In this document: piece by piece, positions 16,758 through 56,105 of the stretch
Layout: each line of letters begins with the position of its first letter
Numbering within the stretch: the first letter of the stretch is position 1
Assembly: GCA_030704615.1 (NCBI GenBank)
Contig: CM060732.1
Span: forward strand, 248,001-312,000
Source of the DNA: Takakia lepidozioides
Lineage: Eukaryota > Plantae > Bryophyta
Length of the DNA stretch: 64,000 bases
Direction of reading: 5' to 3'
Position numbers and translations under genes: made by a program
Notes under the pieces: generated by a model
Databases searched by the model: none
Told to the model about the DNA's origin: nothing
Seen by the model: only the letters and a program-made list of their open reading frames with translations

Positions 16758-18730
16758 CGTCTACCTGTCTCAGCTGCTGCCAACTCTTTCCTTATCCTTC
16801 TGTCCTCCCTAGCCCTCTCCAAAATCTGCTCTATTTTACTGGGATTCTCACATCGTCTAATCGCTGTATTTGCGAGTTTAGCTGCATAACTAGGAAGGGA
16901 GTAGTCCTTCACCGGGCTCTTCATGAAGTCGGCCCTCGCAAAGAACGGGACATTTGTCCTGGCAAGAAGTGTAGGCCCTACATTTTTCGACCCGGATCCT
17001 GGAATCCTGCACATAACAATCACCCACGAGACCAATGAGAACCACAGTCCGGAAATGCGTTTGACAAAAAATCACCAAGAAGGCTTTGCAAACTTACAAT
17101 GTTTGCACTCACTCGTATTACGGGTTCTCCTCGGCATCAATGTCCACTGTCTCTTCCTCCGAGTCCGACAAATCCGAGGAATCTTTGGCTTTGATGGGAG
17201 CCTTCACATTCCGTTAAAGCCCTTCCAGATGGGATCCCCAGACGGATGTGTCCTCCTCGTAGGCAAAGAGGTGCCGGTCAGAAAATTGCCCAGCCCACAT
17301 TGAGGCACCTGTTACAATGCCATCCACTCATTGAAAAATGGCCCTTCACACATGGCGAATTTGAACAGAATGAGAATTCACAGAACAGCATAGTACAAGA
17401 ATCTGCATACCTGTTCCACAGATGAGGTCCAACACTCTGCCCTCTAGATCAGTGCATGCCTCCGTAATTGTTTGGATGAAGGCGGGGCTCCGAGTCCGTG
17501 AATACCGCAGGGGATCCGTTGAAGTGAGACTATGGGGGAGGAGTTCCGTGAGAACGTTGTTGAACAGGACGTCGTAATCGATGGGGTTGCAGTTCAGGTC
17601 AACCAACGATCCCTCCTTCCGGAAAGCAAAGGTCGAGTTCTCCTTCATAAAGTAGTATGCATCGAACTGCTTCGTCTGCATACACAGTGGGGAACGATTA
17701 GAAATCGAATGCGGCACCGCATTTCAAAACATGTTACAAAATGAAAGGACGATTGCTAATGTCCTAATTACCTTCTTCCCTTCCGACCGAAGGCCCAATG
17801 TGTTGATGCACGTCCACTTCTTCTTCAGAATTGGGACAGCGCTCTTGCGGTCCACTTCGCAATTCTTGTCTCTGTTTTTTTGCCTCTGCTCACCAGGACA
17901 ACCACACAGCCTCTGTCGTCCAACACCATGCGGGCAAGCCCGAATCCTTTCTTCCAAAAGTCCTCGGAGTACCTGTTCCAAGATGGCAAACCTTGCAGTC
18001 CTTCCACAAGCTCTCCGTCCGGAATATCCAAGATGATCATATCGCAAGACCACTTGGTGGCTTTTCCGCCCCTCCTGCAATCATTCCCTGCACACACCTT
18101 CTCAAAGAAAGAGACCATCTTCAGAAACCCAGAGGTGTTGGAAGGCTCTGCTTCAGCCGCCTTCTTCAGGGCTCTGCCCTTCAGACCCTCCATGGTCTTG
18201 ATGTATGCCAACTTGGCTGCCAGTCCGTCCAAAGCCGCCAAGAAACTCTCATTGACACACTGAACTACTGTTTCTGGCTCCACTTTTCGGCCTCGTCATT
18301 TCCCCACCGGCTCGAAAGGGTGCCCCCCCGGGGGGTTGAAGAGTGGCTTCTTGGCTGAGCCTGTTCTCGTCCCTCTCGTGACAACGGTGGGCACAGGGGA
18401 TTTCGGCTGCATTTCAGGGGGTGGGCTGGTTGCAAAGTCTCCATCGGAGTCCTCTTCGTCACCCTCTTCCTGCTCTTTCTGTTTCTGCTTCTTTGTCTTC
18501 TTGGGTGTCACAACTGCTGCTCCTTGCTGGCAAGTCCTCTTCTTCGACCCCTTCTGTTGAGCCTGCACAGCTGCATCCACCGTCTTCTGTGCCATCTCAG
18601 CTGCCTTTCTGGATTGTTCCAGAAGCAGCAGAGCAGCGTCCTTTGCCGACTCAGGCTCAGCACGGACACGTCTTTCCTTTCTCTTCTCAATCCGTTTTCC
18701 CGTGCAGATCTTTCTCCGATTCGTCAACAA
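16758..18730 (-). pseudogene. Beta-class amino (N6-A/N4-C) DNA methyltransferase-like gene, copy 1, spliced
   Basis: DMIILDIPDG (motif IV-like, 18017-18028), ARMVLDDRGCVVVLV, RTRSPAFIQTITEACTDLEGRVLDLICGTG/ASMWAGQFSDRHLFAYEED (motifs X, I, II). GT-AG introns 17676-17771 and 17309-17410 restore the frame. One frameshift near 17850 and a TAA stop near 17215. The 3' part continues at 2978-3007 beyond the CACTA. Confidence 0.75.
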
Positions 18731-26789: not shown

Positions 26790-28339
26790 TGTCGCGCACC
26801 TCCCTTCGGTAAGCTCCCCTTCACGTCATAGTTACTCGCTTTGATGCGCGCGCCTGACTCCCAACCTGGCCGCCGGGCCAACTTGGAGCTTCGGCTACTC
26901 ACCGGGACATAACGGTCCCCCTTCGCTCCCCACTAAACCCTCCACCTATTTGGGACTAGTGGAATTCCCTTTGGTAGATGGCAGTCCGGAACAGCTCCCC
27001 ACTCTTTGGTCGCTTTCCGGCTCGCTCGCTTACTCACTAGATTTTGGTCACCAACGGGCTTGCACCGTTCTCGGGGTTACTACTCCCTATATATACTTCT
27101 ATAGCTGTCCGCGGGGGTTTCACAACCAGCCATGCCATTTTATGGCGAACCACCACGAAAACCCTCGACTCCCGGTGATGAGTCGCGGTGAGTCTTGGCC
27201 CGCTCACCACGGCCCCTATGGACCGTGATGAGTCCCAAGACTCCCCACGACTCCCACCACGAGGTCTCCGCCCCCATGGTGAGTCTTATGCCACCCCCAC
27301 TAAGTCCCGCTAAGCTACCACCACCCCTTGTGGAGCCACCCCCACCGCAACCCGGTGTGCGGGGCTCCACCTAGTGAGCGCCACCGCCTCCTTGAGTGCC
27401 TTGGGCACTCAAGGGTGCTTCAGCCCCCCATACCTATCGCTGCCGCTGCCCCCACCACAGGGGCAGCCCCTCATGTGTCCCGACCCCCTGCCCTCAAGGC
27501 AAAGGGCCGCGACACACACCCCTACCAACAGGGAGTCGATGTCCTCATCGACTTGTCCATTTTGTAGAAACGAACATCCAAGTTGTGGCGTCCCACATCA
27601 AGGAGTTTGTTTCCGTACCATGGCGTCCCATGGCAAAGAACCAAACCCCACACTTGACTCTACTCTCCACTAGCTAGTTCGGCCGACTTCCTCCAAGTCC
27701 CGGCCAAGGGTGGAGCCTCTCCAGCTCCTCCCAGTGCACTCTTCTTGGCCTACTTCAAGGCCAAGGAACGATCCTCCCCGAGGATCGAATCGCCTTACTG
27801 CAACAACATTGCTTGCGATCGCTCATGATGCCGCTTTTGGCATCACCTTGAGCAAGGGTTCACCTAGAACCCTCTTTGACTAGGAAGATAACCTTGAACC
27901 AACCGTGCGCCCCAATCACTACAATTGGGTCCGCCTTGGAATGCTGGCCTGAGGTACGGGAACACGCCGAAGCCGCACTACGACTTCGTCCCGAGGCTAC
28001 ACGATTATAGTACGTGAACGGAAAGCACGTAGCTTCCGCGTTAGCCCGCACTACAAGGAAACCCCCTCGGTAGTGCGGTTATAGTACGCGCACGCGCCAG
28101 GTGCGCACTAGCACGTGAACTCCCAAAGAAGGCGCAAGTTTCCTTGCCCCTTGGATGGGGGTCACCCGATTTCGGCACTACGCAAACACACGATTAACCC
28201 AATTTACCTCTCCCACTTTTATAAGCTAGCATGCATTCTACACACTAGCCAACCATACCATGCATCACCATTCCAAACAAAATAGGACGCACAACATTTG
28301 GAACCCATTTCCTTTATAACAAATTTTTGTACAATTTTT

Positions 28340-31300
28340 GCCTCCACATGATGATAGCCCTTCCATTTGACGAGATACTCCGTTTCTCGATTCCTAAACG
28401 TCCTCGATTTAAGTATTGCCTCCACCTCGTACTCAGGTTCATTTTCATGATCCAACAGCATAGGTGGCGGACGCAACACTTGATGCCGATTCGGACGCGC
28501 TTCATATTTGAAGTAAGGCTTCAAAAGGGAGACATGGAATATTGGGTGCACCTTGCTGTTTGCCGGCAGCTCCAATTCATACACATCCTCATTCATAACC
28601 TTCCGAATGCGAAAGGGTCCCGCATACGGAGGTACGAACTTCGGACTCACTTCCGGAGGTAGTCGGAAATTCTTGATGTTCAACCAGACCTCTGTGCCTG
28701 CCTCAAACTTCACTTCCCTCCGCTTCCGATTCGCCTGCCTTTCATACCGTTTCCTAGCTTTGGCAATATTGTACTTTGCAAGCTTCAACAAACGCTCGCG
28801 TTCTTCCAGTACCGCCGCTACTGCCGGTTCCTCAACGTCATGGGCGGCCCAACATGTCGGCACCAGAGGTGCTTTTCCATAGACCAATACAAAAGGGGAA
28901 ACTCCCGTTGCGGAGTGTTCTGTGTTATTATAACAGAACTCTGCCGCGTCTAAGTGTTCCATCCAGTCTGATTGGTCTGCCGACACGTAATTCCGCAAGA
29001 ATTGCTTCACTACGGAATTCACTCTTTCCGTTTGGCCGTCCGTCGTAGGTCGGAAGGCGGTGCTCATCTTCAGCCTCGTCCCCATCTTCTTCCAAAGTGT
29101 CCTCCAAAATTTACTCGTAAACTTTGGATCGCGGTCCGAGACAATATCCTTCGGGACTCCATGATGCTTTAAGACGTGGGCGAAGTAAAGTCGCCCTGTC
29201 TCCTGCGCCGTTGTCGTCTCCTTGGTGGGGATGAAATGGCCCATTTTACTGAACCTATCCACCACCACCATGATTGCATCGAATCCTTTTGACAGCGGCA
29301 TAGCAGTCATGAAATCCATCGAGACGCTTTCCCAAGTCCCCTCTGGAATCGGCAAAGGTTGTAACAGCCCCGATTGCTTTTTGTACTCACTCCGGTTTTG
29401 TTGGCATGTGGTGCATGTCTTGACATACTCCTCTGCCTCCTCCCTCAGTTTGGGCCAGAAATACTCTTTCTTCAAGAGTGCCGCAGTGCGCTTGGCTCCG
29501 CCGTGGCCCGCAAGCGGGCTATCATGGCATTCTCTCAAGAGGCTATCTCTGATCCCTCCCTTCGGCATGTAGAGATGCTTTTGCTTATACCGGAGCAGTC
29601 CATTTTGCAAGTGGAACTGCGATTTACCCCCCATCCTCAAGTCCTGCATCACGGACTTCGCCAGCTCATCCTTCCGGCATACTTATCACATGTGCCACTG
29701 CCATCACCTTTTTCCTCTCAGCTTCAGTTATAGGACACAGACAAGGAGCTGCTGCTTTCTACTTAAAGCATCGGCCACCACATTGTCCCGTCCCGGTTTG
29801 TACTGGATATCCACGTCGAACACCGCCAAAGTATCTTGCCACCTAAGTTGTTTTGGGGATAACTTGGGCTGCGTGGCAAAATACTTCACTGTGACATTGT
29901 CCGTGAACACCTTCACTGGGTTGGAACCAACATAGTGGCGCCAAAGCTCGAGGCAATGCACCACCGCCTTCATCTCTTTTTCGTGCGTCGGCCACCGTCG
30001 CTCCACTTCATTCAGTTTCTTACTTTCGTAAGCCACTGGACGTCCATCTTGCATAAGTACACCCCCAATCGCGAAGTCCGACGCATCTGTATGAATCTCA
30101 AATGGACGATCGAACTCCGGGATTTTCAAGAGCTTCCGCCATCCGCTGCTTCAATTCAGCAAAAGCTTGGCCACAAAATGTATTCCATACCCAGACTTTG
30201 GATTTACACAGAAGGTCCAACAGCGGCCCCGCGATCTTGGCAAAATTTCTCACATACTTCCGGTAATAGGAGGCGAGTCCTAGGAAGGATCGCACTCCCG
30301 GGACCGCCCAGTCCAAGATCGCCCTCACCTTTCTGTCATCCATTTTGATCCCATCCTGTGTAATCACATGCCCCAAGAACTCCACTTTTGTGACCCCGAA
30401 TTTGCACTTTGAAGCTTTGGCATACAGCTTCCCTTCTCGCAATTTTTGGAACACCCTTTTGAGGTGCTCCAGGTGCTCCTCCTTTGTTTTTGAGTACACC
30501 AAGATGTCGTCGATGTACACGATCACAAAGTCATCCAACCACTCTTGAAAAAGGCTGTTCATCAGCGTGCTAAATGTCGCTGGTGCATTGGTGAGCCCAA
30601 AAGGCATCACCAAGAACTCATATGAACCATACCTTGTCCTGCACGCGGTCTTCTCCTCATCTCCTTCCGCCACCCAAATTTGATGATAGCCGGAGCGCAA
30701 GTCGATCCGGCTGAAATACTTCGCTCCTGCCAACCGATCGAAGAGGTCGTCGATCCTTGGCAAAGGGTACCGGTTTTTTATAGTCACCTTATTCAGAGCC
30801 CTGTAATCGACACACATCCGCAGCGTCCCATCCTTCTTGTCTGCGAATAGCACCGGGGCTCCGTAAGGTGACTTACTCGGTCGGATGTACCCCTTTGACA
30901 TTAGATCCTTGAGCTGAGTCTTCAGCTCGACCAACTCCCTGTGGCTCAACCGGTAGGGTGCCTTGGCAGGCGGTTCCGTTCCCGGTATCACCTCAATCTT
31001 GTGGTCAACTCCTCTTCGCGATGGCAAGCCGCTTGGTAAATCCTCCGGCATCACATCCTGGTATTTCTCCAAAATCCCCTTGATCCAATCTGGGCTCGGC
31101 TCCCCATCGCCTTCTCCCTTCACTTCTCTAATGTAAAGCAAAAACTGGGGTTCATGTGCCTCCTCCACGGCCCACTCCCTTGCTGACAGAAGGTTTATTC
31201 GCCCTCCCACGGATTTGGGCGTTTCCGACACTCGTAAGACCTCGTCACCATTCCCACATGACAGCGTGACTACTCTCTTGCGGCCATCTATGACCGCTCC

Positions 31301-32811
31301 GGATTTGCTCAAAAAGGTCATCCCCAAAATGAGATCTACTCCATCGATCTCGCAGATGGTGAAGTTCTCACGTCCCTCCCAACTCCCCAGTTGAAGAGGA
31401 ACATCAAACGCCAACCTTGTCGCCAACTGTGGTTCTCCTTTGGCAGAACGCACCTCAATAGAGGCCCCCACGTCACTTGTCGGGAGTCCCAGCTTTTGTG
31501 TCGTTGCCGGTGTCATGAAGGAGTGCGACGCTCCTGTGTCCACCAACAACGACACATTAGTTCCGGATATTATCCCATCCACGAACAATAACTGACTCCC
31601 TTTTCGTAAGGCGCCAGTTTCCTGATACAACTCACAAGAAAATTTGCCTACCTTGCAAGTCCTGGCGACCACCGCTTCCACCAAGCGACTGATGGTATCT
31701 TCCGACAGCTCCGTGGTCGCCCGAGTCATGTTCAATTGTCGGGGCTTCGTGCACTTCTTGGCCATTTGCCCGGCTCCCCTCAATTGAAACACACTCCATC
31801 AAAGGTCGCCTTCTGTCCGCCATAAGCCGCTCCACCCGCTTTTCCTTTCGAAGCACCGGGTGCCGCCTTGACGTGTGAAGGCCCTCCCTTTGATTTCCAC
31901 GTGCCATTGTCGCCGCGTGGCCTATCCCACTTCTTTTCCGGTCGGAAGGAGTCACCTTCCCGCCGGGTCTTCTTGTGGTTCAGCTCCGTACGGCCTTGTC
32001 TCTCACCCCTAGGGACATCCGAGAAACATTCAGCCCTCTCAATTGCCTCGTTCAAAGTCTTGGGTGGCTTCTCCTCCAACTTCCGCCTGGCCCATAGGGC
32101 CAGTCCCGCCACAAAGTTGAAGACCATTTCTGGTTCTTCCATGTCCGCGACTTCGAGCAACAGCACATTGAAAGCCTGGACATACCCCCGAATGTCATCT
32201 GTTTGCTTCAAATTCCTCATCTTGTCCCGGGCAAGCCAGGACGCGTTGAGGGGCACAAACTGTCTCTTCATCAATTCCTTGAACCCACTCCAGTCCAAGG
32301 TTTCCGGGCTTGGACCTCGGTCGTGAAGGCGTTTCTGCCACCATTGTTGAGCATAGCCCCTCAAATAGGTGGGAGCCACTTCCACCCGATCCTCGTCACT
32401 CAACTTGACCGCCCGGAAGTACTGCTCTAGCTCCAGGAGCCAGGTGTTGAGTGCCTTCCGATTTCGGACGCCCTCGAAGGTGCCGGGTTCCTTAGGCTTC
32501 ACCTTAAACTTTGCCTTAGTGGAAGTGGCATTAGCCGCCTTCAACACGTCTTTCAACGTCCCGCCAAACTGCGCCAACAACCCTTCCCAAAAGGCTGCCG
32601 GCATGGGAGGCATCTCTTGGTTTGTCGGAGCTCTCAAGGATTCCTCGGGCTCCGACTCCTCGGATTCCTCCCGCTCTTGAGCGGCCTCGTTTTCGGAAAC
32701 ATGCATCGCTTCCTCAAATGGCCGCCTCGGTGACACGTCGCCCCCATCGGGCTCACCGGGATCATCATCTTTTGGGCCGTTCCGCTTTCGCTTCGGCTTG
32801 CCCGACCCCAT
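28340..32811 (-). pseudogene. gag-pol of copy A (gag, CCHC, protease, RT, RNase H, integrase, truncated chromodomain)
   Basis: [32 protein letters not shown] zinc finger, SMDF/SDRD/DGQTER, GPF, EYEVEAIL...EYLVKWKGY. Frameshifts and deletions. Confidence 0.97.
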
Positions 32812-32852
32812 GATGAGGCCAATCCCAAGGACGATCGCATACTGAACTCTAC

Positions 32853-32864
32853 GCTCTGATACCA
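32853..32864 (-). promoter_or_regulatory. Primer binding site (tRNA-iMet)
   Basis: TGGTATCAGAGC two bases after the 5' LTR. Confidence 0.95.
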
Positions 32865-33799
32865 AGTGTCGCGCACCTCCCTTCGGTAAGCTCCCCTTCA
32901 CGTCATAGTTACTCGCTTTGATGCGCGCGCCTGACTCCCAACCTGGCCGCCCGGGCCAACTTGGAGCTTCGGCTGCTCACCGGGACATAACGGTCCCCCT
33001 TCGCTCCCCACTAAACCCTCCACCTATTTGGGACTAGTGGAATTCCCTTTGGTAGATGGCAGTCCGGAACAGCTCCCCACTCTTTGGTCGCTTTCCAGCT
33101 CGCTCGCTTACTCACTAGATTTTGGTCACCAACGGGCTTGCACCGTTCTCGGGGTTACTACTCCCTATATATACTTCTGTAGCTGTCCGCGGGGGTTTCA
33201 CAACCAGCCATGCCATTTTATGGCGAACCACCACGAAAACCCTCGACTCCCGGTGATGAGTCGCGGTGAGTCTTGGCCCGCTCACCACGGCCCCTATGGA
33301 CCGTGATGAGTCCCAAGACTCCTCACGACTCCCAGCACGAGGTCTCCGCCCCCATGGTGAGTCCTATGTCACCCCCACTAAGTCCCGCTAAGCTACCACC
33401 ACCCCTTGTGGAGCCACCCCCACCGCAACCCGGTGTGCGGGGCTCCACCTAGTGAGCGCCTCCGCCTCCTTGAGTGCCTTGGGCACTCAAGGGTGCTTCA
33501 GCCCCCCATACCTATTGCTGCCGCTGCCCCCACCACAGGGGCAGCCCCTCATGTGTCCCGACCCCCTGCCCTCAAGGCAAAGGGCCGCGACACATAGTGG
33601 AACTGATGCATCACAGAACTCGGAGGATGAGGGGGATGAGGGGGATGAGGAAGAAGGTGGGGCAAGTTCCTCGGAGGGTGTAGGAGAGTAGTGCCCATGC
33701 CGGCTATGACAGTTAGAACACACTTGTATAGACGTGGCTTGCCACAAAATTTGCAATAAAATGTTACATTTCAAGTCCACTGGTGCCACAATCCAACTT

Positions 33800-40563: not shown

Positions 40564-40715
40564 CTAAAAACTCAACAACCCCCTCCTGTAAAATTATATT
40601 TAAGGTGTTTTAAACCCCCCTCTGTATGTATAATGTTGTACATGGGGGGGTTTAAAATACCCCCTCCTGTGCACGCACGTGGCTGGTACATTTAATGAGG
40701 AGTGCACCCCCCAGG

Positions 40716-43700
40716 GCCCGGGACAAGATGAGGAATTTGAAGCAAACAGATGACATTCGGGGGTATGTCCAGGCTTTCAATGTGCTGTTGCTCGAAGTCG
40801 CAGACATGGCAGAACCAGAAATGGTCTTCAACTTTGTGGCGGGACTGGCCCCATGGGCCAGGCGGAAGTTGGAGGAGAAGCCACCCAAGACTTTGAACGA
40901 GGCAATTGAGAGGGCTGAATGTTTCTCGGATGTCCCTAGGGGTGAGAGACAAGGCTGTACGGAGCTGAACCACAAGAAGACCCGGCGGGAAGGTGACTCC
41001 TCCCGACCGGAAAAGAAGTGGGATAGACCACGCGGCGACAATGGCACGTGGAAATCGAAGGGAGGGCCTTCACACGTCAAGGCGGCACCCGGTGCTTCGA
41101 AAGGAAAAGCGGGTGGAGCGGCTTATGGCGGACAGAAGGCGACCTTTGATGGAGTGTGTTTCAATTGCGGGGAGCCCGGGCACATGGCCAAGAAGTGCAC
41201 AAAACCTCGACAATTGAACATGACTCGGGCAACCACGGAGCTGTCGGAAGATACCATCAGTCGCTTGGTGGAAGCGGTGGTCGCCAGGACTTGCAAGGTA
41301 GGCAACTATTCTTGTGAGTTGTATCAGGAAACTGGCGCCCTGCGTAAAGGGAGTTAGTTATTGTTCGTGGATGGGATAATATCCGGAACTAACGTGTCGT
41401 TGTTGGTGGACACAGGAGCGTCGCACTCCTTCATGACGCCGGCGGCAGCGCGAAAGTTGGGACTCCCGACAAGTGACGTGGGGGCCTCTATTGAGGTGCG
41501 TTCTGCCAAAGGAGAACCACAGTTGGCGACAAGGTTGGCGTTTGATGTTCCTCTTCAACTGGGGAGTTGGGAGGGACGTGAGAACTTCACCATCTGCGAG
41601 ATCGATGGAGTGGATCTCATTTTGGGGATGACCTTTTTGAGCAAATCCGGAGCGGTCATAGATGGCCGCAAGAGAGTAGTCACGCTGCCATGTGGGAATG
41701 GTGGCGAGGTTTTACGAGTGTCGGAAACGCCCAAATCCATGGGAGGGCGAATAAACCTTCTGTCAGCAAAGGAGTGGGCCGTGGAGGAGGCACACGAGCC
41801 CCAATTTTTGCTTTACATTACAGAAGTGACAGGAGAAGGCGATGGGGAGCCGAGCCCAGATTGGATCAAGGGGATTTTGGAGAAATACCAGGATGTGATG
41901 CCGGAGGATTTACCAAGCGGCTTGCCACCGCGAAGAGGAGTTGACCACAAGATTGAGGTGATACCGGGATCGGAACTGCCTGCAAAGGCGCCCTACCGGT
42001 TGAGCCACAGAGAGTTGGTCGAGCTGAAGACTCACCTCAAGGATCTAATGTCAAAGGGTTATATCCGGCCGAGTAAGTCACCTTACGGAGCCCCGGTGCT
42101 ATTTGCAGACAAGAAGGTTGGGACGCTGCGGATGTGTGTCGATTACAGGGCTCTGAATAAGGTGACTATCAAAAACCGGTACCCTTTGCCAAGGATCGAC
42201 GACCTCTTCGATCGGTTGGCAGGAGCGAAGTATTTCAGCCGGATCGACTTGCGCTCCGGCTATCATCAAATTCGGGTGGCGGAAGGAGATGAGGAGAAGA
42301 CCGCGTGCAGGACAAGGTATGGTTCATATGAGTTCTTGGTGATGCCTTTTGGGCTCACCAATGCACCAGCGACATTTAGCACGCTGATGAACAGCCTTTT
42401 CCAGGAGTGGTTGGATGACTTTGTGATCGTGTACATCGACGACATCTTGGTGTACTCGAAAACAAAGGAAGAACACCTGGAGCACCTAAAAAGGGTGTTC
42501 CAAAAATTGCGAGAAGGGAAGCTGTATGCCAAAGCTTCAAAGTGCGAATTCGGGGTCACAAAAGTGGAGTTCCTGGGGCATGTGATTACACAGGATGGGA
42601 TCAAAATGGATGACAGAAAGGTGAGGGCGATCTTGGACTAGGAGCCTCCGACTTCGGTCCCGGGAGTGCGATCCTTCATAGGACTCGCCTCCTATTACCG
42701 GAAGTATGTGAGAAATTTCGCCAAGATCGCGGGGCCGCTGTCGGACCTTCTGTGTAAATCCAAAGTCTGGGAATGGAATACATTTTGTGGCCAAGCTTTT
42801 GCTGAATTGAAGCAGCGGATGGCGGAAGCTCCAGTCTTGAAAATCCCGGAGTTCGATCGTCCATTTGAGATTCATACAGATGCGTCGGACTTCGCGATTG
42901 GGGGTGTACTTATGCAAGATGGACGTCCAGTGGCTTACGAAAGTAAGAAACTGAATGAAGTGGAGCGACGGTGGCCGACGCACGAAAAAGAGATGTAGGC
43001 GGTGGTGCATTGCCTCGAGCTTTGGCGCCACTATGTTGGTTCCAACCCAATGAAGGTGTTCACGGACAATGTCACGGTGAAGTATTTTGCCACGCAGCCC
43101 AAGTTGTCCCCAAAACAACTTAGGTGGCAAGATACTTTGGCGGTGTTCGACGTGGATATCCAGTACAAACCGGGACGAGATAACGTGGTGGCCGATGCTT
43201 TAAGTAGAAAGCAGCAGCTCTTGTTGGTGTACAAGGGCGAGACGGCGCTCCAAAGGAAGATCCGGAAGGCTTGCCGGAAGGATGAGCTGGCAAAGTCCGC
43301 GATGCAGGACTTGAGGATGGGGGGTAAATCGCAGTTCCACTTGCAAAATGGACTGCTCCGGTATAAGCAAAAACGCCTCTACGTGCCGAAGGGAGGGATC
43401 AGAGATAGCCTCTTGAGAGAATGCCATGATAGCCCGCTTGCGGGCCACGACGGAGCCAAGCGCACTGCGTCACTCTTGAAGAAAGAGTATTTCTGGCCCA
43501 AACTGAGGGAGGAGGCAGAGGAGTATGTCAAGACATACACCACATGCCAACAAAACCGGAGCGAGTACAAAAAGCAAGCGGGGCTGTTACAACCCTTGCC
43601 AATTCCAGAGGGGACTTGGAAAAGCGTCTCGATGGATTTCATGACTGCTATGCCGCTGTCAAAAGGATTCGATGCAATCATGGTGGTGGTGGATAGGTTC

Positions 43701-44697
43701 AGTAAAATGGGCCATTTCATCCCCACCAAGGAGACGGCAACGGCGCAGGAGACAGGGCGACTTTACTTCGCCCACGTCTTAAAACATCATGGAGTCCCGA
43801 AGGATATTGTCTAGACCGCGATCCAAAGTTTACGAGTAAATTTTGGAGGGCACTTTGGAAGAAGATGGGGACGAGGTTGAAGATGAGCACCGCCTTCCGA
43901 CCTACGACCGACGGCCAAACAGAAAGGGTGAATTCCGTAGTGAAGCAGATCTTGCGGAATTACGTGTCGGCAGACCAAACAGACTGGGTGGAACACTTAG
44001 ACGCGGAAGAGTTCTGTTATAATAACACAAAACACTCCGCAACGGGAGTTTCCCTTTCGTATTGGTCTATGGAAAAGCACCTCTGGTGCCGACAAGTTGG
44101 GCCGCCCAGGACGTTGAGGAACCGGCAGTAGCGGCGGTACTGGAAGAACACGAGCGTTTGTTGAAGCTCGCAAAGTACAATATTGCCAAAGTTAGGAAAC
44201 GGTATGAAAGGCAGGCAAATCGGAAGCGGAGGGAAGTGAAGTTTGAGGCAGGCACAGAGGTCTGGTTGAACATCAAGAATTTCCAACTACCTCCGGAAGT
44301 GAGTCCAAAGTTCGTACCTCCATATGCGGGACCCTTTCGCATTCGGAAGGTTATGAATGAGGATGTGTATGAATTGGAGCTGCCGGCAAACAGTAAGGTG
44401 CACCCAGTATTCCATGTATCCCTTTTGAAGCCTTACTTCAAAGATGAAGCGCGTCCGAATCGGCATCAAGTGTTGCGTCCATCACCTATGCTGTTGGATC
44501 ATGAAAATGAACCTGAGTACGAGGTGGAGGCAATACTTAAGTCGAGGAGGTTCAGGAACCGAGAAACGGAGTATCTTGTCAAATGGAAGGGCTATCATCA
44601 TGTGGAGGCATCTTGGGTGCGTGCCTCAGAAATGGGAAACGCATCCGAGGCGGTTGCAACTTTCGAAGGGCGACCTCAAAAGCGGAAGAAGCGTTGA
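40716..44697 (+). pseudogene. gag-pol of copy B (CCHC, PR, RT, RH, IN, complete chromodomain)
   Basis: CFNCGEPGHMAKKC, LVDTGAS, YIDD, YEVEAIL...YLVKWKGY...SWVRASEM. In-frame stops at 41355, 42639 and 42996; frameshifts near 43812 and 44055. Confidence 0.97.
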
Positions 44698-49759: not shown

Positions 49760-51430
49760 AATACAAGAAAGTGATAGCCACCATAAGTGCTGTCCGAACA
49801 CCAACTGGTTATGGGTCATCCCTCCGTACGAAGTTCAGCAAAGAAGACGGGGTCCATGGTTTGAAGTCTCATGACTACCACAATCTATTGCAAGACATCT
49901 TGCCCATTGCAGTACGTGGGACATTGACTCCCAAGGTTTGTGAGACAATCTATAGATTGGGAGGCTTGTTCCGGTGGATTTGCTCCAAAGAGTTGGAAGA
50001 AGCAGATTTTCCAAGCATGAAGACGGAGGCGGCGGAGGTAATGTGTATGTTGGAGATGAACCTTCCTCCCTCCTTCTTTGACATCCAAGTGCACTTGGTA
50101 GTGCACTTAGTGGAAGAGGCTTCGATTGCCGGCCCCGTTCATTCTTGGTGGATGTACTTCCTTGAGCGTTATATGAAGACTTTGAAAGGATTTGTAAGAC
50201 AAATGGCGCACCCGGAGGGTAGCATGGCGGAGGGGTATACGTTGCAAGAAGCTATGTTCTATTGCACGGAGTACATGGCAAGGGTGGATGAGGAATCCCC
50301 TCGGATGTGGAAGGAAGAGGAGGATGCACGAACCAAAGACATCATTTTGCCCAAAAAATCGAAGAGGATAAAATTGCCGACCTTGGTGATTGAGCAAGCG
50401 CATGACTTCATACTGAATAACACCCCATCCATACATGAGTGGGAGGCAAGATACAATAATCTTGTTCAACAACGAGAGGAGGAGACGCTTGCATGGAGGC
50501 GGAACCATCCAAGGCCAGTTACTAGACGCCCACGACGAGGAGCGGGCCGCCGGAATGTTCCTTCACAAATTTGCCCATGGAATTGCAGCCTCCAAGTTCA
50601 TTCCAACAGTGGCTTTGGACTTCAGTTTATGACACCGTTGCTCAAGGAGAGGTGGTTTCAGATTTGGTGTAAGACATTGCAAGGGACCCCTCTCAATTCG
50701 CGACCTCATACACGACGGTTTGGGTTCACGGTCGTCATTTCCGCATTCGTGCTCTTGACATGAAGCGCAAAACAACCTTTGATTCTGGCTTGTGTGCCAC
50801 ATATTGGCAAGACTCCGTGTGGGGCAAGGGAGATACACGACCTGCTATGAGCAAATTTGAGTACATTGGAGAGCTTGAGAGCATACTCCAACTTTAGTAT
50901 ACAAGATACCGGTCTCTTCTCTTCAAGGGAAGGTGGTTCCAGCCACATCTTGTGGGGCCCTCCACAATACAAGTGCAAGATGATTGTGGTTTCATGCGCG
51001 TCAATGCAGATAGGCTCAACCCTACTCATCGTCCCTCCGATGAGCCTTTTTCACGGCCTTCAGACATTGAGCAAGTTTTCTTCTTCGATGACAAAACAAG
51101 AGGGGGGAATTGGAAGGTGGTTGTGCATGCTCAGCCAAGATGAAGACGTATCTATCATGGTCTCGGATCTCCATGGGGAGAGGCAATTGCGGTGGACGGA
51201 GAGACTGGTCATAATGATGCTGATGATGGAGGTTGAGTAGAGAGGGTAGAGGAGGATGATGACGCCCCGGACAATGCATCCTGGACCCTATATGATGAAG
51301 CTCTAGAAGATACGGATGTTGAAGAAAGAGACGAAGACACGGCCATTGACAACGAGATGGAGGATGATTCGGAGGTGCCTTTTGAGGGCTGGGCCATTTA
51401 TGATGACGACTCCGATGACCAAGAAGACTT
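49760..51430 (+). pseudogene. 5'-truncated second CACTA transposase (DUF4218/DUF4216-like) with acidic tail
   Basis: GLKSHDYH, LPPSFFDIQVH, WMYFLERYM, PEGSMAEGY, DEPFSRPSDIEQVFF, WKVV. Clearly diverged from 4080-6176. Confidence 0.92.
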
Positions 51431-51824
51431 GTAGCTTGATGAGGATGAAGAGGCTCCGGATGATGATGTTCAAGTTGATTAGACACAAAATCAAAGCTAC
51501 ATAACAATTCTCGCACCGAACTGGACCCATCCCTTCGATTGATTGTACATGTACATGCATATTGTACTTTACTTCTATGATTCATCAAATATGGCTGTGG
51601 CTGGTAGTCTTTCAAGAAATAAGGCAGAGGCAATGAATATGTTGGAGCAATACATACAGATGTGGTATCAAGAGAATTATCAAAATGAATGTCACAATCT
51701 ACAAGAAGGTCCACAACAACAAGCTAAACCATAAAGAAAAACAAACACCCTACCCCAGTACCATATGGAAAAAAAAAAAAACTAAGAACCCCCAAAGGCC
51801 CTAAACCTAAACCTAGAAAGCCCT

Positions 51825-52276
51825 GCCGTCGCCTCCTGCGACCCCCACGCGTCGCCAACTGTGACGCGTTTTCTGGGATTTATCAGGCCGGGGGTCGCAA
51901 ACGGCGACCGCCAACCATCGCCAACTACGACCTGTTTTTTTGAATGGATTTATGAGGCCGGGGGTCGCAAACGGCGACGGCCAGCCGGCGCAAACTGTGA
52001 CATGTTTCTTTGTTTTGAAAGAATAGGGCAGCCGGGCAGTTTGCGACGCCCGGCCGTCGCAGGGGTCTTTTGATCTTCATGCCACCATGCGACGGCCGGG
52101 TGTCGCAAGAAAGGGCTGCGATGAAAGAAATGACAAGAAATGGTTTTTTTTTCCGGCGTGCGACGACCGGCCATCGCCAGAAAGGGCTGCCTTCTGCCCC
52201 TCGCTGGGGGCGACGCTTAGGCGTCGCACGGAAGGGCTGTCATTTTCCCTTCATCACTCCGTGCGACGGCCTAGTG
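51825..52276. repeat. GTCGCA/TGCGAC subterminal repeats ending in a candidate CACTA terminus (TAGTG)
   Basis: About 10 GTCGC/GCGAC motifs; reverse complement of the end reads CACTAGGCCGTCGCAC. No partner end found. Confidence 0.5.
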
Positions 52277-52295
52277 GCCTATACCTCTCTAGGAA

Positions 52296-52620
52296 AGTGT
52301 CCTTGGCAAGGCCATCCAGCTATCACCAAGTCAATGGCACCATGCCGGTCCAAATCATCCGCCCCCAGCAAGGTAATGTCTGCTGGCAAGGCCTTTTGAT
52401 ACCCTTGAATTGCTGAGAAAGGCAACAACTCTGGATACCGGTGTGTGAGCAAGGCGATGTGACGCATAGAAATACGCCGAGCTATCTCATCCTTCTCCAC
52501 ATACAAGTACTTGCTTACTTTAATCCCTGCTTACAACACTCCTGCAAGCCCAGTGCTCATGCCTCCAAACATGTCTAGCAAACAAATCCCTGAGTCAAGT
52601 GGTTGCCAGGTAATGGGCAT
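52296..52620 (-). pseudogene. C5-cytosine DNA methyltransferase domain (motifs I-IV), truncated, within a retrotransposon polyprotein
   Basis: ICLLDMFGGMSTG (I), YLYVEKD (II), ADIT (III), IDLVIAGWPCQGH (IV, catalytic PC). One TAA stop. Confidence 0.92.
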
Positions 52621-55090
52621 TGTGCCCAAATGAGCTAACTGAGGAGGTCCGGGTGATGTCACTGAACTCCCCTCACTCACCAATGGATAGGCCTCCTACC
52701 ATGCTTGGTGCACACACTCGCCTGCTACTCGATGCAAATTCCCAACTGTACCCCACAGTAAAGATGTTTGAATTTGGAAAGGGTAAGGCTCCAAATCCGC
52801 CTCTGTAAGGCCCAAGCCTGCAATTGCTGCTCTCCCCAACATCAATGGCTGTGCTCCCGAGTCCAACAAGATCCGCAATGACCTATACCTCCTCCCGGTT
52901 GGGCCATCCAATTGAAACACTCCATCCTGATTGTCCACCAGGACTACCCCATGAGTCACCATGCTGCGCTCAATGGCTGGCCTAGCTGGCAACTCCTGCA
53001 ACCTTGCAGCTGCCGCTTGCCATGGTGCAGTTGTGGCTGACTTCACCCTTGAATCCAAAGCATCCATAGACTGCACCTTATCTGCTATCTCCGCAGATAT
53101 TGCCGATGCATCACCACTCTCACAGAGTCTAGCTACTAGTCTGAACACAGCAACTGGCCAAATCCCCGGCATTGCAATGGTCATTGCAGAAAATAATGGA
53201 GCTTGGCAAACCGCCGTAGCCGCCCCCAACAATGTACTGGCTGCACCTTTCTTTGCATCACCACCCACTGGCATTTCCCGAGCCATGCCAACTCTCCCCA
53301 ATGACACTCGTGGCTCTACCTCTGACACACTTGGACGAGCGGGTGTCATTGATGGTGTAGGTGGCACTGTCTCAGCCAATGTAAAGGACTGTTGAAGCCT
53401 TGTCTGACGACTTGTTTCCCCCCTTTGTGGATCAAAATCCACATCCGCTCCTCTTGGCTCAAGAGCACGCATTGCTGCTCGAGTGACAGCAGCAGTAGAG
53501 TCCAATACATGCAATGGCCCTGCAAGTGCGGCTCCACACATGAAGCCCATACCAATCTGATCTTCCCTAGGCATAGGAGGTTGTGCAAGTGGGGCTTGAA
53601 CCTCAATCCTTGGAGTTGGCGCAACATGAGTAGTGGACATGGCAGCAAGACGTTGCTCTAGCTGGGCAAGTCTATCCACCATGCCTTGGTCATGACCTTG
53701 ACCCTGAACCTATGCTCCTTGGTTTTGGTTATGACCTCCACCCCGACCTCTGCCTCCTCTACCTCTCTGGACTACATTGCCTCGTCCTCTGCCACCATTA
53801 TTCCATTGGAACTGGCCTGGCCGTAGCTCATGATGCAAGCCATAACAATGGGCCTCCTCATGCCCATACTTTCCACAATGCCCACACTGTAGTTGTGTAG
53901 GCTGTGCCTATGCCGGCCCTTTGCCTCTCTCCGGGCAATCCTTCTTGACATGGGGTCCTCCACAATCCCAACAAGTCACACCCGACTGTTGTTGGCCTGA
54001 GAATGAAAGAAGAGACCTCTGCATCTGAGATCCTCTCTGTCCTTCCCTCGGCTTCACCTGAGCCCCTTTGTTGCCTTGAACACGTTGGGATAGTGGTTAT
54101 TGTTGGCTAGGAGCCCCACTTCGTGTTGTCTCCTTGCCAAACCCCACCATAACCACTCGCTCCTCCACCATATTGAGCTCTATCCGCTTTGCCAGCAAAA
54201 ACACATTTGCTAAGGTGGGTTGGTCCACTTGTAGGAGAGTTGCATCCCGCACCCTTCTCCTCAGCTCCTTGTCCAGGATCCCATACCAGAACTGGACTGC
54301 CTGAGCTTCTCTAACCCCTTGGGTGACGTTTATGAAGCGCCTCATGCGAGTGTAAACCTCCCTCAAACTCTCAGTAGACCTTCGTTGGAACTCTTGCAAA
54401 CTCCGCAAATTCTCTGTCCTTATCCCTTGGTAGTTTCTCCTCAACTCCTCAAAGAACTCCACAACTGGGTTAAAGGCAGACACAGGTGCTGGTGCTATAG
54501 CAGGAGCTTGAGTGGATTTCCCAACTCCTGTACCACTTGTCCCACTACTAGTGCTTGCAGTTGGAGATGTTTGTGTAGCTGCTGGTATCGCTGCTGCCCT
54601 TGTGCCTCTAGTGATGGAGACATAGTTAGGTGACCAATACTCTTGCCACTCCTCAATCTCCACCGCATGTCCCCGCCTAAATTCATGGTAATCATCCATG
54701 GGCGGCCCCTCAAGGTGCTAGAATAGCCCTTTCCACGCCATAAAGGGCGTAAACAGTTGTGGATTGCGCATCCGTTGCAAATCACACCAACTGTCAAACT
54801 CTTGTATGAAGTCATCAAGCTCGATGGTGCCCACAGCTCCAGAGTACCTACGTGGCCCCTTGGTAGCTCCATACATCTCCTCCATCGTGTCCACAACAAG
54901 GCACGGAAATGACTTGCACCCTCGGCGAGAATCCTCCTGACTCCGAGTCTGAACCTTCCTCAGAAGACACTGAAGGTGAAGGTGGCCTAAACCACACACC
55001 TCGTCTTGTGTACCCACTAGTATCACTGGTGCTCGTACCGGCGCTCCCCTCAGCAACTAGTGGCACCTCCATGATGAAAACTCACAACTC
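52620..55090 (-). pseudogene. Gypsy-type gag (capsid + CCHC) and aspartic protease of the DNMT-carrying retrotransposon
   Basis: RYSG...LDDFIQEFDSW...HLEG, FQRRSTESLREVYTRM, CGHCGKYGHEEAHC (~53845-53887), RILLDSGAQ (~52850-52875). LTR not identified. Confidence 0.88.
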
Positions 55091-55789
55091 AACCGGTTGT
55101 CAACCTGTCTCTAATCCCCACTTTCCACAAAGGTAACCGGGTAGAGAACCTGTTGCGGCTAGTGGTTCAAACAGGAATAATAGGTTTCTAATGTAGATCT
55201 GTACCTGCACCTGCATCCACCGCAAGCACTCCTATGGTCTGCTGGTCATCAACCCAGCCTCACCACCGACAACATACTCTAGGATTGGCCGATGATCAAA
55301 TCCGGACCAACCTCCTTTGAAAACAAGCGCCCACACAAAGCTAACATGGCGCACAATCAAGCATGCAGGTGTGGAGAGGATCCAAACACAAGAAAATCAA
55401 GACAACAACTCCCCACACCAAAAACACTCCACAGTGTTTGCTCCTGCAAGGACACCCCAGCCCAAACCCGGATGACTCTTGCCTCCACCTACGGAAAGGT
55501 TTTGGGCTACAGAGAGGGTGAAAGACTACAAAGAAGAGAGACTAAAGCAACTCCTAATCCCAACATGCTCTCATCCCACTACCCTATATCCACACTCTCT
55601 TGCTGGTCTCTCAAATAACTCTTCAGGAGCCCTCAAGATGTCTCTCAAACAATCTCACTAAGGCTCCCAATCCTTACACAATGGGATTCCAAAACAGTAC
55701 ACCAAGGCCCCAAGAGCCTGCCAAAACTTGGCCCTCGAGGACCCCAAATAGTCCCTCACACAAGTCACCAAAGACTCCTCAAGCTCGCC

Positions 55790-55935
55790 AAATATTGGCC
55801 TCCAAGGACCCCAAAATAGTCCTCCAAATGGTCCTCCAAGGACCCCAAACAGTCCTCCAACGACTCCCAATAGTCCTCCAAATGATACTCCAAGGGCCCT
55901 CAAATATCTTCCAAACAATCCTCCAAAGGCCCTTA
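55790..55935. repeat. Degenerate short tandem repeat (GTCCTCCAA core)
   Basis: About 7 recurrences upstream of gag. Confidence 0.7.
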
Positions 55936-56105
55936 AATTTCACTAAGTGCAAGTCCTTGACTTCTATGCTTCTACTCAAGCAAAAATATGGTTTCTAGGT
56001 GGTCATAAGAGGCATCTTCTTGCTCTCTTCCACCCCAATGTGCAACCAAGAGTGGTCCAACTCAACTAGCAAGTCATTGTCCACCAAATCAATCCCCCTT
56101 GTAGT

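Follow-up and report, generated by a model that had tools for sequence, protein, structure and literature searches.

Introduction

Retrotransposons that carry a DNA methyltransferase (DNMT) have so far been described in dinoflagellates and in charophyte algae. Among the closest described systems is KnitGypsy-Dnmt3 of the charophyte alga Klebsormidium nitens, a Gypsy-type element with a DNMT3-class domain (de Mendoza et al. 2018, PMC5890265). The same work describes SymbioDIRS-Dnmt3 and SymbioLINE-Dnmt, the C5-DNMT-carrying retroelements of Symbiodinium; its species survey included Physcomitrella and Selaginella, and Marchantia was not among the species covered (PMC5890265). In yeast, two of the SymbioDIRS domains methylated CG de novo, and the Klebsormidium Gypsy-borne domain gave no methylation, a result which the authors deem inconclusive (PMC5890265). 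In the literature available outside subscription, a search for land-plant DNMT retrotransposons returned only this paper and its later citations, and KnitGypsy-Dnmt3 is the only published Gypsy-borne DNMT3 element found there.

The window considered here is a stretch of 64,000 nucleotides of the Takakia lepidozioides genome (GCA_030704615.1, contig CM060732.1, positions 248,001 to 312,000). A first-pass annotation described, on its minus strand, an LTR-type polyprotein in which a DNMT follows the protease. On the basis of sequence homology, the region is best explained, with a probability of about 0.88, as a decayed, internally deleted and 3′-truncated copy of a bryophyte Ty3/Gypsy-type family that carries a DNMT3-class methyltransferase.

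Structure of the Takakia Copy

A minus-strand frame runs from 55056 to 52282 without a frameshift, and gag, CCHC knuckles, protease and DNMT all lie within it (Table 1). The start methionine of ORF1 is aligned with Met1 of the Marchantia protein Mp_4g09160, to which the Gag region of the window copy is 48% identical counted from that residue, and the homology extends from 54885 to approximately 52297. Coding had been drawn from 55090, which is upstream of this methionine. The element continues further 5′ as a non-coding leader, matched in the same relative position in Calypogeia (L005, L001), Marchantia (L006, L008) and the metagenome element L009. The 5′ extent is a lower bound, as the leader reaches at least 55434.

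Table 1. Features of the retrotransposon copy and of the adjoining DNA transposon (window coordinates).
Feature	Position	Strand	Details
Conserved non-coding 5′ leader	55209..55434	-	324-549 bp upstream of ORF1 Met (54885); blastn 70-87% identity, colinear
Gag-like capsid region, ORF1	54097..54885	-	profile nodes 43 to ~330; TAG 54720-54718, ends at TAA 54099-54097
Two CCHC knuckles	53973-53935 and 53886-53845 (span 53845..53973)	-	TAG 53910-53908 between them
Family-specific linker, knuckles to protease	52870..53844	-	profile-aligned; no known domain; TAG 53712-53710
Retropepsin, N-terminal third	52759..52869	-	active site LLDSGAQ 52869-52849; rest of protease missing
In-frame deletion junction	52756..52761	-	~135-147 aa (~0.4 kb) lost, by profile alignment
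Putative DNMT3-like domain, N-terminal part	52297..52755	-	profile nodes 911-1052, E = 3.2e-56; pre-domain segment, motifs I and IV; stops 52698-52696 and 52533-52531
DNMT motif I (LLDMFGGMSTG)	52581-52549	-	AdoMet-binding motif (FxGxG)
DNMT motif IV (GWPCQGH) with catalytic Cys	52317-52297	-	PCQ motif
Final 20 nt before the break	52277..52296	-	homology fades; TAG 52281-52279
CACTA-type (En/Spm) DNA transposon, 3′ end	51800..52276	+	ends ...GGCCTAGTG at 52276; terminus 52276-52272

Six in-frame stops, each a TAG or a TAA, interrupt the copy, the last two of them in the DNMT part, and a further stop is located just past the end of the homology. When the stops are masked, the translation matches a profile built from 23 intact relatives with E = 3.4e-191. 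Such a score, at the level of sequence, places the homology of the window copy to the family far beyond chance and bears out the order of gag, CCHC, protease and DNMT motifs I and IV first proposed for this strand. The profile has 1392 nodes, of which the window copy is gapped at nodes 764-910 and stops at node 1052. The relatives are 38-56% identical to the window copy over the colinear parts of ORF1 and 62-66% identical for short DNMT fragments. In a quick tree of ORF1, the window copy falls within the named-bryophyte clade (SH-aLRT 100).

The window pieces by themselves stay under the Pfam cut-offs, because each of them is short and decayed: PF00145 scores 10.6 bits (cut-off 22; the relatives reach 29-45 bits), Asp_protease_2 14 bits and zf-CCHC 13.6 bits. 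Likewise, no Pfam gag model reaches its threshold on the window Gag region. Identification therefore needed the relatives. A 328-aa ORF (52699-53682) matches 30 of them in Marchantia, Calypogeia, Sphagnum and metagenomes, with a best E of 7.6e-58, and the 83-aa DNMT piece alone retrieved 227 proteins at E <= 1e-3 in a representative search (best 1.9e-25). The DNMT part of the window copy is 56-66% identical to those of Marchantia, Calypogeia and metagenome copies.

One CCHC knuckle had been noticed initially; there are two, and the positions of Cys and His in both are invariant across the 23 relatives. The protease motif D(S/T)GA is kept in 22 of the 23, and at the active-site position some relatives score above the Pfam cut-off for Asp_protease_2 (P0042, P0069) and gag-asp_proteas (P0042). 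The DNMT indeed begins close after the protease in this copy. This short spacing, however, is not the design of the family, since it results from an in-frame deletion at ~52758/52759, where the profile passes from node 763 to node 911 between the neighbouring residues 766 and 767. The deletion took the protease beyond its N-terminal third together with the linker to the DNMT, and residues 686-820 of Mp_4g09160 are left without a counterpart in the window.

The element is cut right after motif IV, as the first-pass annotation stated. Past this motif the relatives continue with GH(S/T)RAG and then motif VI, whereas the window reads HFPREV and a stop. Motifs VI-X are missing owing to the truncation; motifs VI (ENV), VIII, IX and X are conserved in the 23 relatives. 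The break is bordered by the 3′ end of a CACTA-type transposon, which is a neighbour separate from the retrotransposon. Three marks of the CACTA class are present: the terminal CACTA, short subterminal repeats and a DUF4218-type transposase, whose ORF (49771-50763, E = 1.8e-33) is on the same strand as the 3′ end. The subterminal GTCGC/GCGAC repeats are dense, with 14 motif copies in ~0.5 kb (51800-52276) compared with 0-4 per kb in other parts of the window, and 52276 is the sole TAGTG end in the window with such repeats; repeats of 70 nt also support the assignment. The CACTA end lies only a few codons after motif IV, and this one junction suggests that the transposon inserted into the retroelement. 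Within the window, no second CACTA terminus with matching repeats and no 3-bp target duplication was found, and Pfam had no match for the ORFs at 44.4-49.3 kb. The neighbourhood as a whole is a patchwork of nested transposons, including two chromoviruses.

Searches of the window by blastn and tblastn with all pieces found no second copy. The missing half of the DNMT and the RT and integrase are also absent from the window by tblastn (150 hits, Marchantia ORF1/ORF2 and Sphagnum ORF2), for which the sole matches, at 27-43% identity, lie in the two unrelated chromoviruses. No RT, RNase H or DDE integrase of the DNMT-bearing element and no flanking LTR or split repeat was found within the window. 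The retrotransposon nature of the piece thus rests on its relatives and, judged by homology, the piece would be a fragment of an RT-RNase H-integrase element. The copy itself is dead and inert: it has the stops, the in-frame deletion and the 3′ cut, and it is strongly depleted in CpG (CpG observed/expected 0.35, compared with 0.70 for the window).

Intact Relatives

The named hosts of the relatives are Marchantia, Riccia, Calypogeia and Sphagnum, all of them liverworts or peat mosses, in agreement with the early guess of a land-plant lineage; the other relatives come from metagenomes. At least one fragment of the family is labelled bacterial in a MAG, and the annotation of Marchantia lists several copies, e.g., Mp_4g09160 and Mp_8g17980, as ordinary genes. 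Genomes contain multiple copies of the family, and there are many loci in Marchantia and Calypogeia.

In an intact ORF1, Gag and two CCHC knuckles are followed by an aspartic protease and then by a complete DNMT3-like domain. Across 23 such proteins the overall identity is 26-44%, yet DNMT motifs I, IV, VI, VIII, IX and X are conserved. Colinear gag-PR-DNMT copies occur in Calypogeia fissa (L001, L005), Marchantia polymorpha (L006, L008) and Sphagnum jensenii (L007), which removes the initial concern that other gag-PR copies might lack the DNMT. These results bear on the possibility that a processed or transduced fragment of a host DNMT3 gene lies by chance or capture beside an unrelated gag-protease remnant. 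In the window the DNMT is incomplete (motifs I-IV) and RT is missing, the DNMT piece alone is sub-threshold in Pfam, and the surroundings are a patchwork of nested transposons, all of which would suit such an event. Nevertheless, gag, knuckles, linker, protease and DNMT share one frame with no frameshift, the segment immediately before motif I is conserved in the relatives as well, and this arrangement is repeated in Calypogeia, Marchantia, Sphagnum and numerous metagenome contigs, with intact ORFs of 1250-1775 aa among them. Chance or capture is contradicted by this conserved colinearity and has a negligible probability. As far as sequence comparison can tell, the gag-protease-DNMT arrangement is a design conserved among these retrotransposons.

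Five intact elements (L002, L008, L009, L010, L012) display the whole architecture: gag-CCHC-PR-DNMT is followed in frame by RT-RNaseH-integrase-PHD. The expected full-length gag-PR-DNMT-RT-RH-IN order thus exists, although not as one continuous frame, as a single in-frame UAG divides the DNMT from the RT. This stop is followed by CAR in 5/5 elements and then by YYA in 4/5. All five have RT, RNase H and integrase in ORF2, four of them with the C-terminal PHD finger; the contig of L002 breaks off within the integrase. The Pol order RT, RNase H, DDE integrase holds in eight relatives (L002, L003, L005, L007, L008, L009, L010, L012).

The same copies allow the assessment of whether the gag-PR-DNMT ORF was co-opted as a bryophyte host gene, with the window sequence as its pseudogene. 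The ordinary-gene annotation of Mp_4g09160 and Mp_8g17980, the intact ORF1 and the conserved catalytic motifs would fit a domesticated gene. Nonetheless, RT-RH-IN follows ORF1 in the copies examined with their flanks (L008, L002, L009, L010, L012, L005, L007), terminal repeats are present in L008, L007 and partly L005, there are many loci per genome in Marchantia and Calypogeia, and the decay of the window copy is of the transposon type. Domestication is accordingly improbable, and a mobile family remains the preferred reading.

The repeats are split direct repeats rather than plain LTRs, so that of the original description as an LTR-type element the retrotransposon nature stands, by its relatives, and the plain LTRs do not. 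Their order is A1, coding region, B1, A2, B2 in L008 (Marchantia) and L007 (Sphagnum), and only the B pair is seen in L005. This is the layout described for DIRS-like elements (PMC5890265), and DIRS is the class best known for carrying methyltransferases, which could indicate a tyrosine-recombinase retroelement of the DIRS/Ngaro type. Against this, ORF2 of the relatives has RT_RNaseH domains of the Ty3/Gypsy type, Integrase_H2C2 and an rve DDE integrase, a tyrosine recombinase is absent from the Pfam scans of the relatives, and the Gag with CCHC knuckles is joined to a retropepsin. A DIRS/Ngaro identity is hence very improbable, even more so than domestication, and the Gypsy-type assignment is retained.

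Class of the Methyltransferase

The class can be judged on the relatives, in which motifs I, IV, VI, VIII, IX and X follow the canonical, non-permuted order. The domain profile scores best with DNMT3A (1e-23), followed by DRM (1e-12), M.HaeIII (6e-8) and DNMT2 (7e-7). In the AlphaFold model of the domain (pLDDT 88), the matches to DNMT3A/3B/3C have E = 5e-19 and TM 0.81-0.84, and the best 50 Foldseek matches are all DNMT3A/3B/3C. By profile and predicted fold, the enzyme of the family is of the DNMT3 class, nearer to DNMT3 than to DRM, DNMT2 or bacterial enzymes. A bacterial Dcm-like origin was considered and rejected, because DNMT3 scores 15 orders of magnitude better.

Host enzymes, namely animal DNMT3A/3B/3C and plant DNMT3/DRM, are the best sequence and fold matches of the family domain. 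With host DNMT3 it shares canonical motifs I, IV, VI, VIII, IX and X, including the AHR-R-(F/W)W-(G/T)NL stretch. Unlike mammalian DNMT3, to which it is ~20% identical, it lacks PWWP and ADD and forms part of a Gag-protease fusion; the motifs are permuted in DRM but not in the family.

Comparison with Known Elements

By its published description (PMC5890265), KnitGypsy-Dnmt3 resembles the bryophyte family in that its Gypsy-type polyprotein (RT, RNase H, DDE integrase) contains a non-rearranged DNMT3-class domain, the catalytic residues are conserved and the host is a streptophyte. It also has the DIRS-like repeat order A, coding, B, A, B, which on the bryophyte side is seen in the relatives L008 and L007. 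One difference lies in the hosts, since those of the bryophyte family are land plants (liverworts, Sphagnum), unreported in PMC5890265. The name Klebsormidium does not occur among the named matches of the homology searches. With this precedent and the intact relatives of full design, the first-pass interpretation is largely supported.

The Symbiodinium elements are more distant in design. In SymbioDIRS-Dnmt3, Pol likewise contains a DNMT3-class domain and the repeats are split, but in place of the DDE integrase SymbioDIRS and SymbioLINE have a tyrosine recombinase or a LINE endonuclease; they are also without the gag-CCHC-retropepsin module and live in a dinoflagellate host.

A metagenomic sister lineage (P0217/L011, P0112, P0092, P0106) has the order RT, RNase H, DNMT, integrase, PHD and optionally Tudor. 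Compared with Marchantia ORF2, its RT-RH and IN-PHD show 44% identity; the DNMTs are 37% identical, and the PHD finger is similarly placed at the integrase C-terminus. In contrast, its DNMT is located between RNase H and integrase within one continuous ORF, while in the bryophyte family the DNMT is found between protease and RT, ahead of the stop codon.

The two chromoviruses of the window have a similar Gypsy-type backbone with a chromatin reader at the integrase C-terminus. This reader is a chromodomain in the chromoviruses and a PHD finger in the family, chromoviruses carry no DNMT, and the family RT is only 37-43% identical to theirs.

Proposed Mechanism

The arrangement of the intact elements suggests how they may be expressed. 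Gag-PR-DNMT would be the main translation product, giving methyltransferase in amounts similar to those of Gag, and the UAG would occasionally be read through to give the full Gag-PR-DNMT-RT-RH-IN-PHD protein. The DNMT might methylate the cDNA of the element or its new insertion, and the PHD finger might steer the integration via H3 histone tails. Self-methylation of new cDNA, which the first-pass annotation also raised, is a hypothesis. The window copy, in turn, underwent a deletion of ~140 aa, gained six nonsense codons and lost most of its CpGs, a pattern typical of prolonged 5mC deamination. A CACTA DNA transposon probably landed a few codons past the catalytic PCQ, cutting the copy.

A wider reading can be offered tentatively, and we consider it somewhat doubtful. 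Bryophytes, including Marchantia polymorpha, may harbor an undescribed and still intact Gypsy-type lineage whose DNMT3-type enzyme is catalytically competent and, being encoded ahead of a leaky UAG, is expressed about as abundantly as Gag, along with a PHD-tagged integrase. Such elements would write 5mC on their own cDNA or insertion site and read histone tails for the choice of target, and the DNMT module would have moved between two positions within the lineage.

Significance

Why a transposon carries a class of enzyme that hosts use against transposons is an open question, and the evidence has so far come from dinoflagellate and charophyte elements, with an inconclusive activity test for the sole Gypsy-borne example. 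The dead fragment in the window points to a sizeable land-plant family. DNMT-bearing copies of this kind inflate the DNMT gene counts in the annotation of bryophyte genomes. Marchantia polymorpha, a plant for which transformation, methylome profiling and genome editing are standard methods, has intact two-ORF copies; therefore, the activity and sequence context of a transposon DNMT, the predicted read-through of the UAG and the role of the PHD finger are directly testable there.

Frame and parts of the window copy

The retroelement remnant occupies a single minus-strand frame, which runs from 55056 to 52282 with zero frameshifts and contains six in-frame stops, exclusively TAG or TAA; a seventh (52281-52279) falls past the end of the homology. 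Pfam gave no score above threshold on the separate pieces of the copy, so the identification, for which the first-pass annotation had suggested a PF00145 search, had to rest on relatives, and it was through these that the DNMT was recognized. A family profile made from 23 intact ORF1 proteins (gag-CCHC-protease-DNMT) matches the stop-masked window translation with E = 3.4e-191. Together with the single frame, this confirms the minus-strand gag-protease-DNMT order read by the first-pass annotation, which had counted one CCHC knuckle where two are present.

The match consists of two aligned blocks, profile nodes 43-763 (window residues 48-766) and 911-1052 (window residues 767-920). Between them, at about 52758/52759, an in-frame deletion has removed ~147 profile positions, or ~135 aa measured against the annotated Marchantia protein Mp_4g09160, which leaves one third of the protease and none of the protease-DNMT linker. 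The distance of only ~250 bp from protease to DNMT, as first reported, is therefore real but is the product of this deletion and not the native spacing. A conserved non-coding leader is common to the copies, and the 5′ part of the window element reaches at least 55434. Upstream of the conserved leader lies a short degenerate tandem array (55814-55938; periods 12, 21 and 33), which may belong inside or outside the 5′ region of the element. With a probability of about 0.9, the fragment is a piece of a Gypsy-type DNMT3-bearing retrotransposon.

Coordinates of features in the window and in related elements
Sequence	Feature	Position	Strand	Remark
Window copy	Gag-like region	from Met 54885	-	
Window copy	Two CCHC knuckles	53973-53935; 53886-53845	-	
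Window copy	Long linker		-	between CCHC knuckles and retropepsin active site
Window copy	Retropepsin active site	52869-52849	-	LLDSGAQ
Window copy	DNMT motif I	52581-52549	-	
Window copy	DNMT motif IV	52317-52297	-	GWPCQGH
Window	DUF4218 transposase ORF	49771-50763	+	same strand as the 52276 end, 1.5 kb inside; assigned to the CACTA element cutting the DNMT copy
Window	DUF4218 CACTA-type transposase remnant ORF	5226-6176	-	second of two in the window
Window	Chromovirus-type Gypsy	28219-32901	-	gag, protease, RT, RNase H, integrase, chromodomain
Window	Chromovirus-type Gypsy	40695-44697	+	gag, protease, RT, RNase H, integrase, chromodomain
Window	Paralogous ORF, 244 aa	56440-57174	-	head-to-head with the next; C-terminal halves alike
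Window	Paralogous ORF, 192 aa	57558-58136	+	
L008	Repeat A	6826-7122; 17248-17545		
L008	Repeat B	17134-17246; 17545-17657		
L007	Repeat A	7913-8251; 16661-16999		
L007	Repeat B	16544-16658; 16999-17113		
L005	Repeat B	16158-16679		B pair alone detectable
L008	PHD finger	16823-16957		ORF2 residues 994-1038; Pfam E = 1e-10
Intact elements	UAG context	L008:13835-13846; L002:6000-6011; L009:4799-4810; L010:5024-5035; L012:5408-5419		
L011	Sister-lineage polyprotein P0217	1188-7223		single ORF ending in PHD, DNMT between RNase H and integrase; also P0112, P0092, P0106, P0060, P0047

Relatives and their hosts

The 83-aa DNMT piece of the window copy was searched against 1.84 billion representative proteins, of which 227 matched at E <= 1e-3 (best 1.9e-25), two of them from the liverwort Calypogeia fissa. 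Matches to the 328-aa linker-protease ORF come from Marchantia polymorpha, C. fissa and Sphagnum jensenii, and from metagenomes. When the DNMT region of a long relative was used as query, the matches included intact ORF1 proteins 1150-1775 aa in length, and several of these are annotated Marchantia genes; a search with the DNMT domain extended the hosts to Marchantia paleacea, Riccia sorocarpa, Sphagnum troendelagicum and S. tenellum. The land-plant lineage, earlier put forward as a possibility, is thus borne out by named hosts in Marchantia, Riccia, Calypogeia and Sphagnum; vascular plants and Klebsormidium do not occur among the named matches of these homology searches. Decayed colinear copies are present in C. 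fissa (L001, L005), Marchantia (L006) and S. jensenii (L007) and on contigs L003 and L004.

P0266, a protein of 455 aa on a 2.4-kb contig, carries the label of DNA cytosine methyltransferase from a Candidatus Obscuribacterales MAG. Its identity to the Marchantia transposon DNMT domain is 48% over 94% of the domain, and it probably represents a fragment of a bryophyte transposon placed in the wrong bin.

Design of the intact elements

Five intact elements have one common plan, one on Marchantia chromosome 4 (L008) and four in metagenome assemblies (L002, L009, L010, L012). ORF1 consists of gag, two CCHC knuckles, protease and DNMT. In all five, a single UAG separates it from ORF2, which lies in the same frame and encodes RT, RNase H, an integrase (Integrase_H2C2 and rve) and a PHD finger. 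The latter is found in four of the elements, and in the fifth, L002, the contig end falls within the integrase. The terminal repeats, seen in L008 and L007 and as the B pair in L005, are split in the order A1, coding region, B1, A2, B2, despite the DDE integrase. The expected gag-PR-DNMT-RT-RH-IN series in one frame between LTRs therefore holds in order and frame, but it is interrupted by the UAG and is not flanked by two plain LTRs.

In every intact element the codon after the UAG is CAA or CAG, and four of them have YYA as the codon after that. Tobamoviruses have a leaky stop in such a context (UAG-CAR-YYA), and because of this likeness, programmed read-through of the UAG is the likely route to the Pol part. 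The PHD finger is located at the integrase end, in the position of the chromodomain in chromoviruses. With DNMT and PHD finger in one element, a predicted DNA-methylation writer is thus joined with a predicted histone-tail reader, and we infer that live copies would work in this manner. Downstream of ORF2, L009 (8281-9315) and L010 (8505-9528) carry an exact tandem duplication of a ~515-nt unit; either assembly or a tandem repeat junction of the element could explain it.

A sister architecture occurs in the metagenomic polyproteins P0217, P0112, P0092 and P0106, where the order is RT, RNase H, DNMT, integrase and PHD, with Tudor in some. Compared with the Marchantia element, RT-RH and IN-PHD are 44% identical and the DNMT 37%. 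The 44%-identical backbone puts the DNMT module in two different positions within one element lineage, in which it appears to have changed place. The search with the 83-aa piece also returned two metagenome proteins with other combinations: P0119, a polyprotein of Copia type (gag_pre-integrs, rve) in which a C5-DNMT segment separates the CCHC knuckle from a protease-like barrel, and P0116, which combines a C5-DNMT domain with a Dam-like adenine methyltransferase domain.

The methyltransferase domain

Measured against P0013, the first of the set, the 23 ORF1 proteins reach an identity of just 26-44%. Motif I, motif IV (GWPCQGH), VI (ENV), VIII (AHR-R--WTNL), IX (ERERAMGF) and X (LGQA-DLN) are nevertheless invariant or nearly so, and their retention across such divergent proteins is an argument that catalysis is under selection in live elements. 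The AlphaFold model of the Marchantia domain (pLDDT 88, pTM 0.89) has its best fold matches in DNMT3A, 3B and 3C (E down to 5e-19; target-normalised TM 0.81-0.84). Profile and predicted fold both assign the domain to the DNMT3 class, and its motifs follow the canonical order. The first-pass annotation had called a C5-DNMT, which stands, and had proposed comparison with DNMT3, DRM and Dcm. Against solved structures, the best E values of the domain profile were 1.1e-23 for DNMT3A, 1.2e-12 for DRM, 5.7e-8 for M.HaeIII and 6.6e-7 for DNMT2, which rules out a Dcm-like or DRM-like enzyme.

Truncation, decay and placement

The window copy stops at profile node 1052 of 1392, directly past GWPCQGH, in agreement with the cut first noticed after motif IV. 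The cut was made by a CACTA-type DNA transposon, whose plus strand terminates at 52276 in ...GGCCTAGTG. In the ~0.5 kb before this end the GTCGC/GCGAC motif occurs 14 times, in both orientations (the rest of the window has 0-4 per kb), and 70-nt repeats are also present. The junction joins an exact CACTA end to coding sequence from the middle of the DNMT, which points to an insertion of the DNA transposon into the retroelement rather than of the retroelement into the transposon. The second CACTA terminus, a 3-bp target duplication and the remainder of the retroelement were not found in the 64-kb window.

The CpG observed/expected ratio is 0.35 in the window copy, 0.70 in the whole window and ~0.87 in the two chromoviruses; the TG+CA ratio is 1.43 in the copy and 1.20 in the window. 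Low CpG, raised TG+CA and stops of TAG and TAA only fit prolonged decay under cytosine methylation, and the copy is an inert relic. A quick maximum-likelihood tree of ORF1 places it within the clade of named bryophyte copies (SH-aLRT 100), outside those of Calypogeia, Sphagnum and Marchantia, so that the window probably comes from a bryophyte other than these. In this quick tree the Sphagnum and Marchantia copies are grouped to the exclusion of Calypogeia (SH-aLRT 93), at odds with the moss-liverwort split; old paralogous lineages or horizontal transfer could account for it.

The window as a whole is a transposon-rich contig of plant and not human DNA. Its two chromoviruses are unrelated to the DNMT copy and much younger, because they retain long open frames and the higher CpG ratio. 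The head-to-head ORF pair has no Pfam family and no relative among solved structures, and may represent either host genes or a piece of another repeat.

Relation to known DNMT-bearing retroelements

de Mendoza et al. 2018 described DNMT-bearing LINE and DIRS retroelements in Symbiodinium and KnitGypsy-Dnmt3 in Klebsormidium nitens (PMC5890265). The latter has a DNMT3-class domain with conserved catalytic residues in a Gypsy Pol polyprotein, and its repeats show the DIRS-like arrangement A, coding, B, A, B (PMC5890265). Compared by published description, the bryophyte family has all three features in common with it (domain class, repeat order and conserved catalytic residues) and is therefore best filed as the same kind. 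The Klebsormidium domain gave no methylation in yeast, a result its authors call inconclusive (PMC5890265), and for this reason self-methylation of cDNA by this kind of element is kept here as a hypothesis. The published species survey included Physcomitrella and Selaginella, with Marchantia absent (PMC5890265), and later papers citing de Mendoza et al. 2018 speak only of 'streptophytes'. In the literature searched, with subscription journals mostly outside it, no description of land-plant members was found. The interest of the relic lies in the family it reveals: its members are land-plant representatives of the Gypsy-DNMT3 kind, and an experimentally tractable model plant has intact ones.
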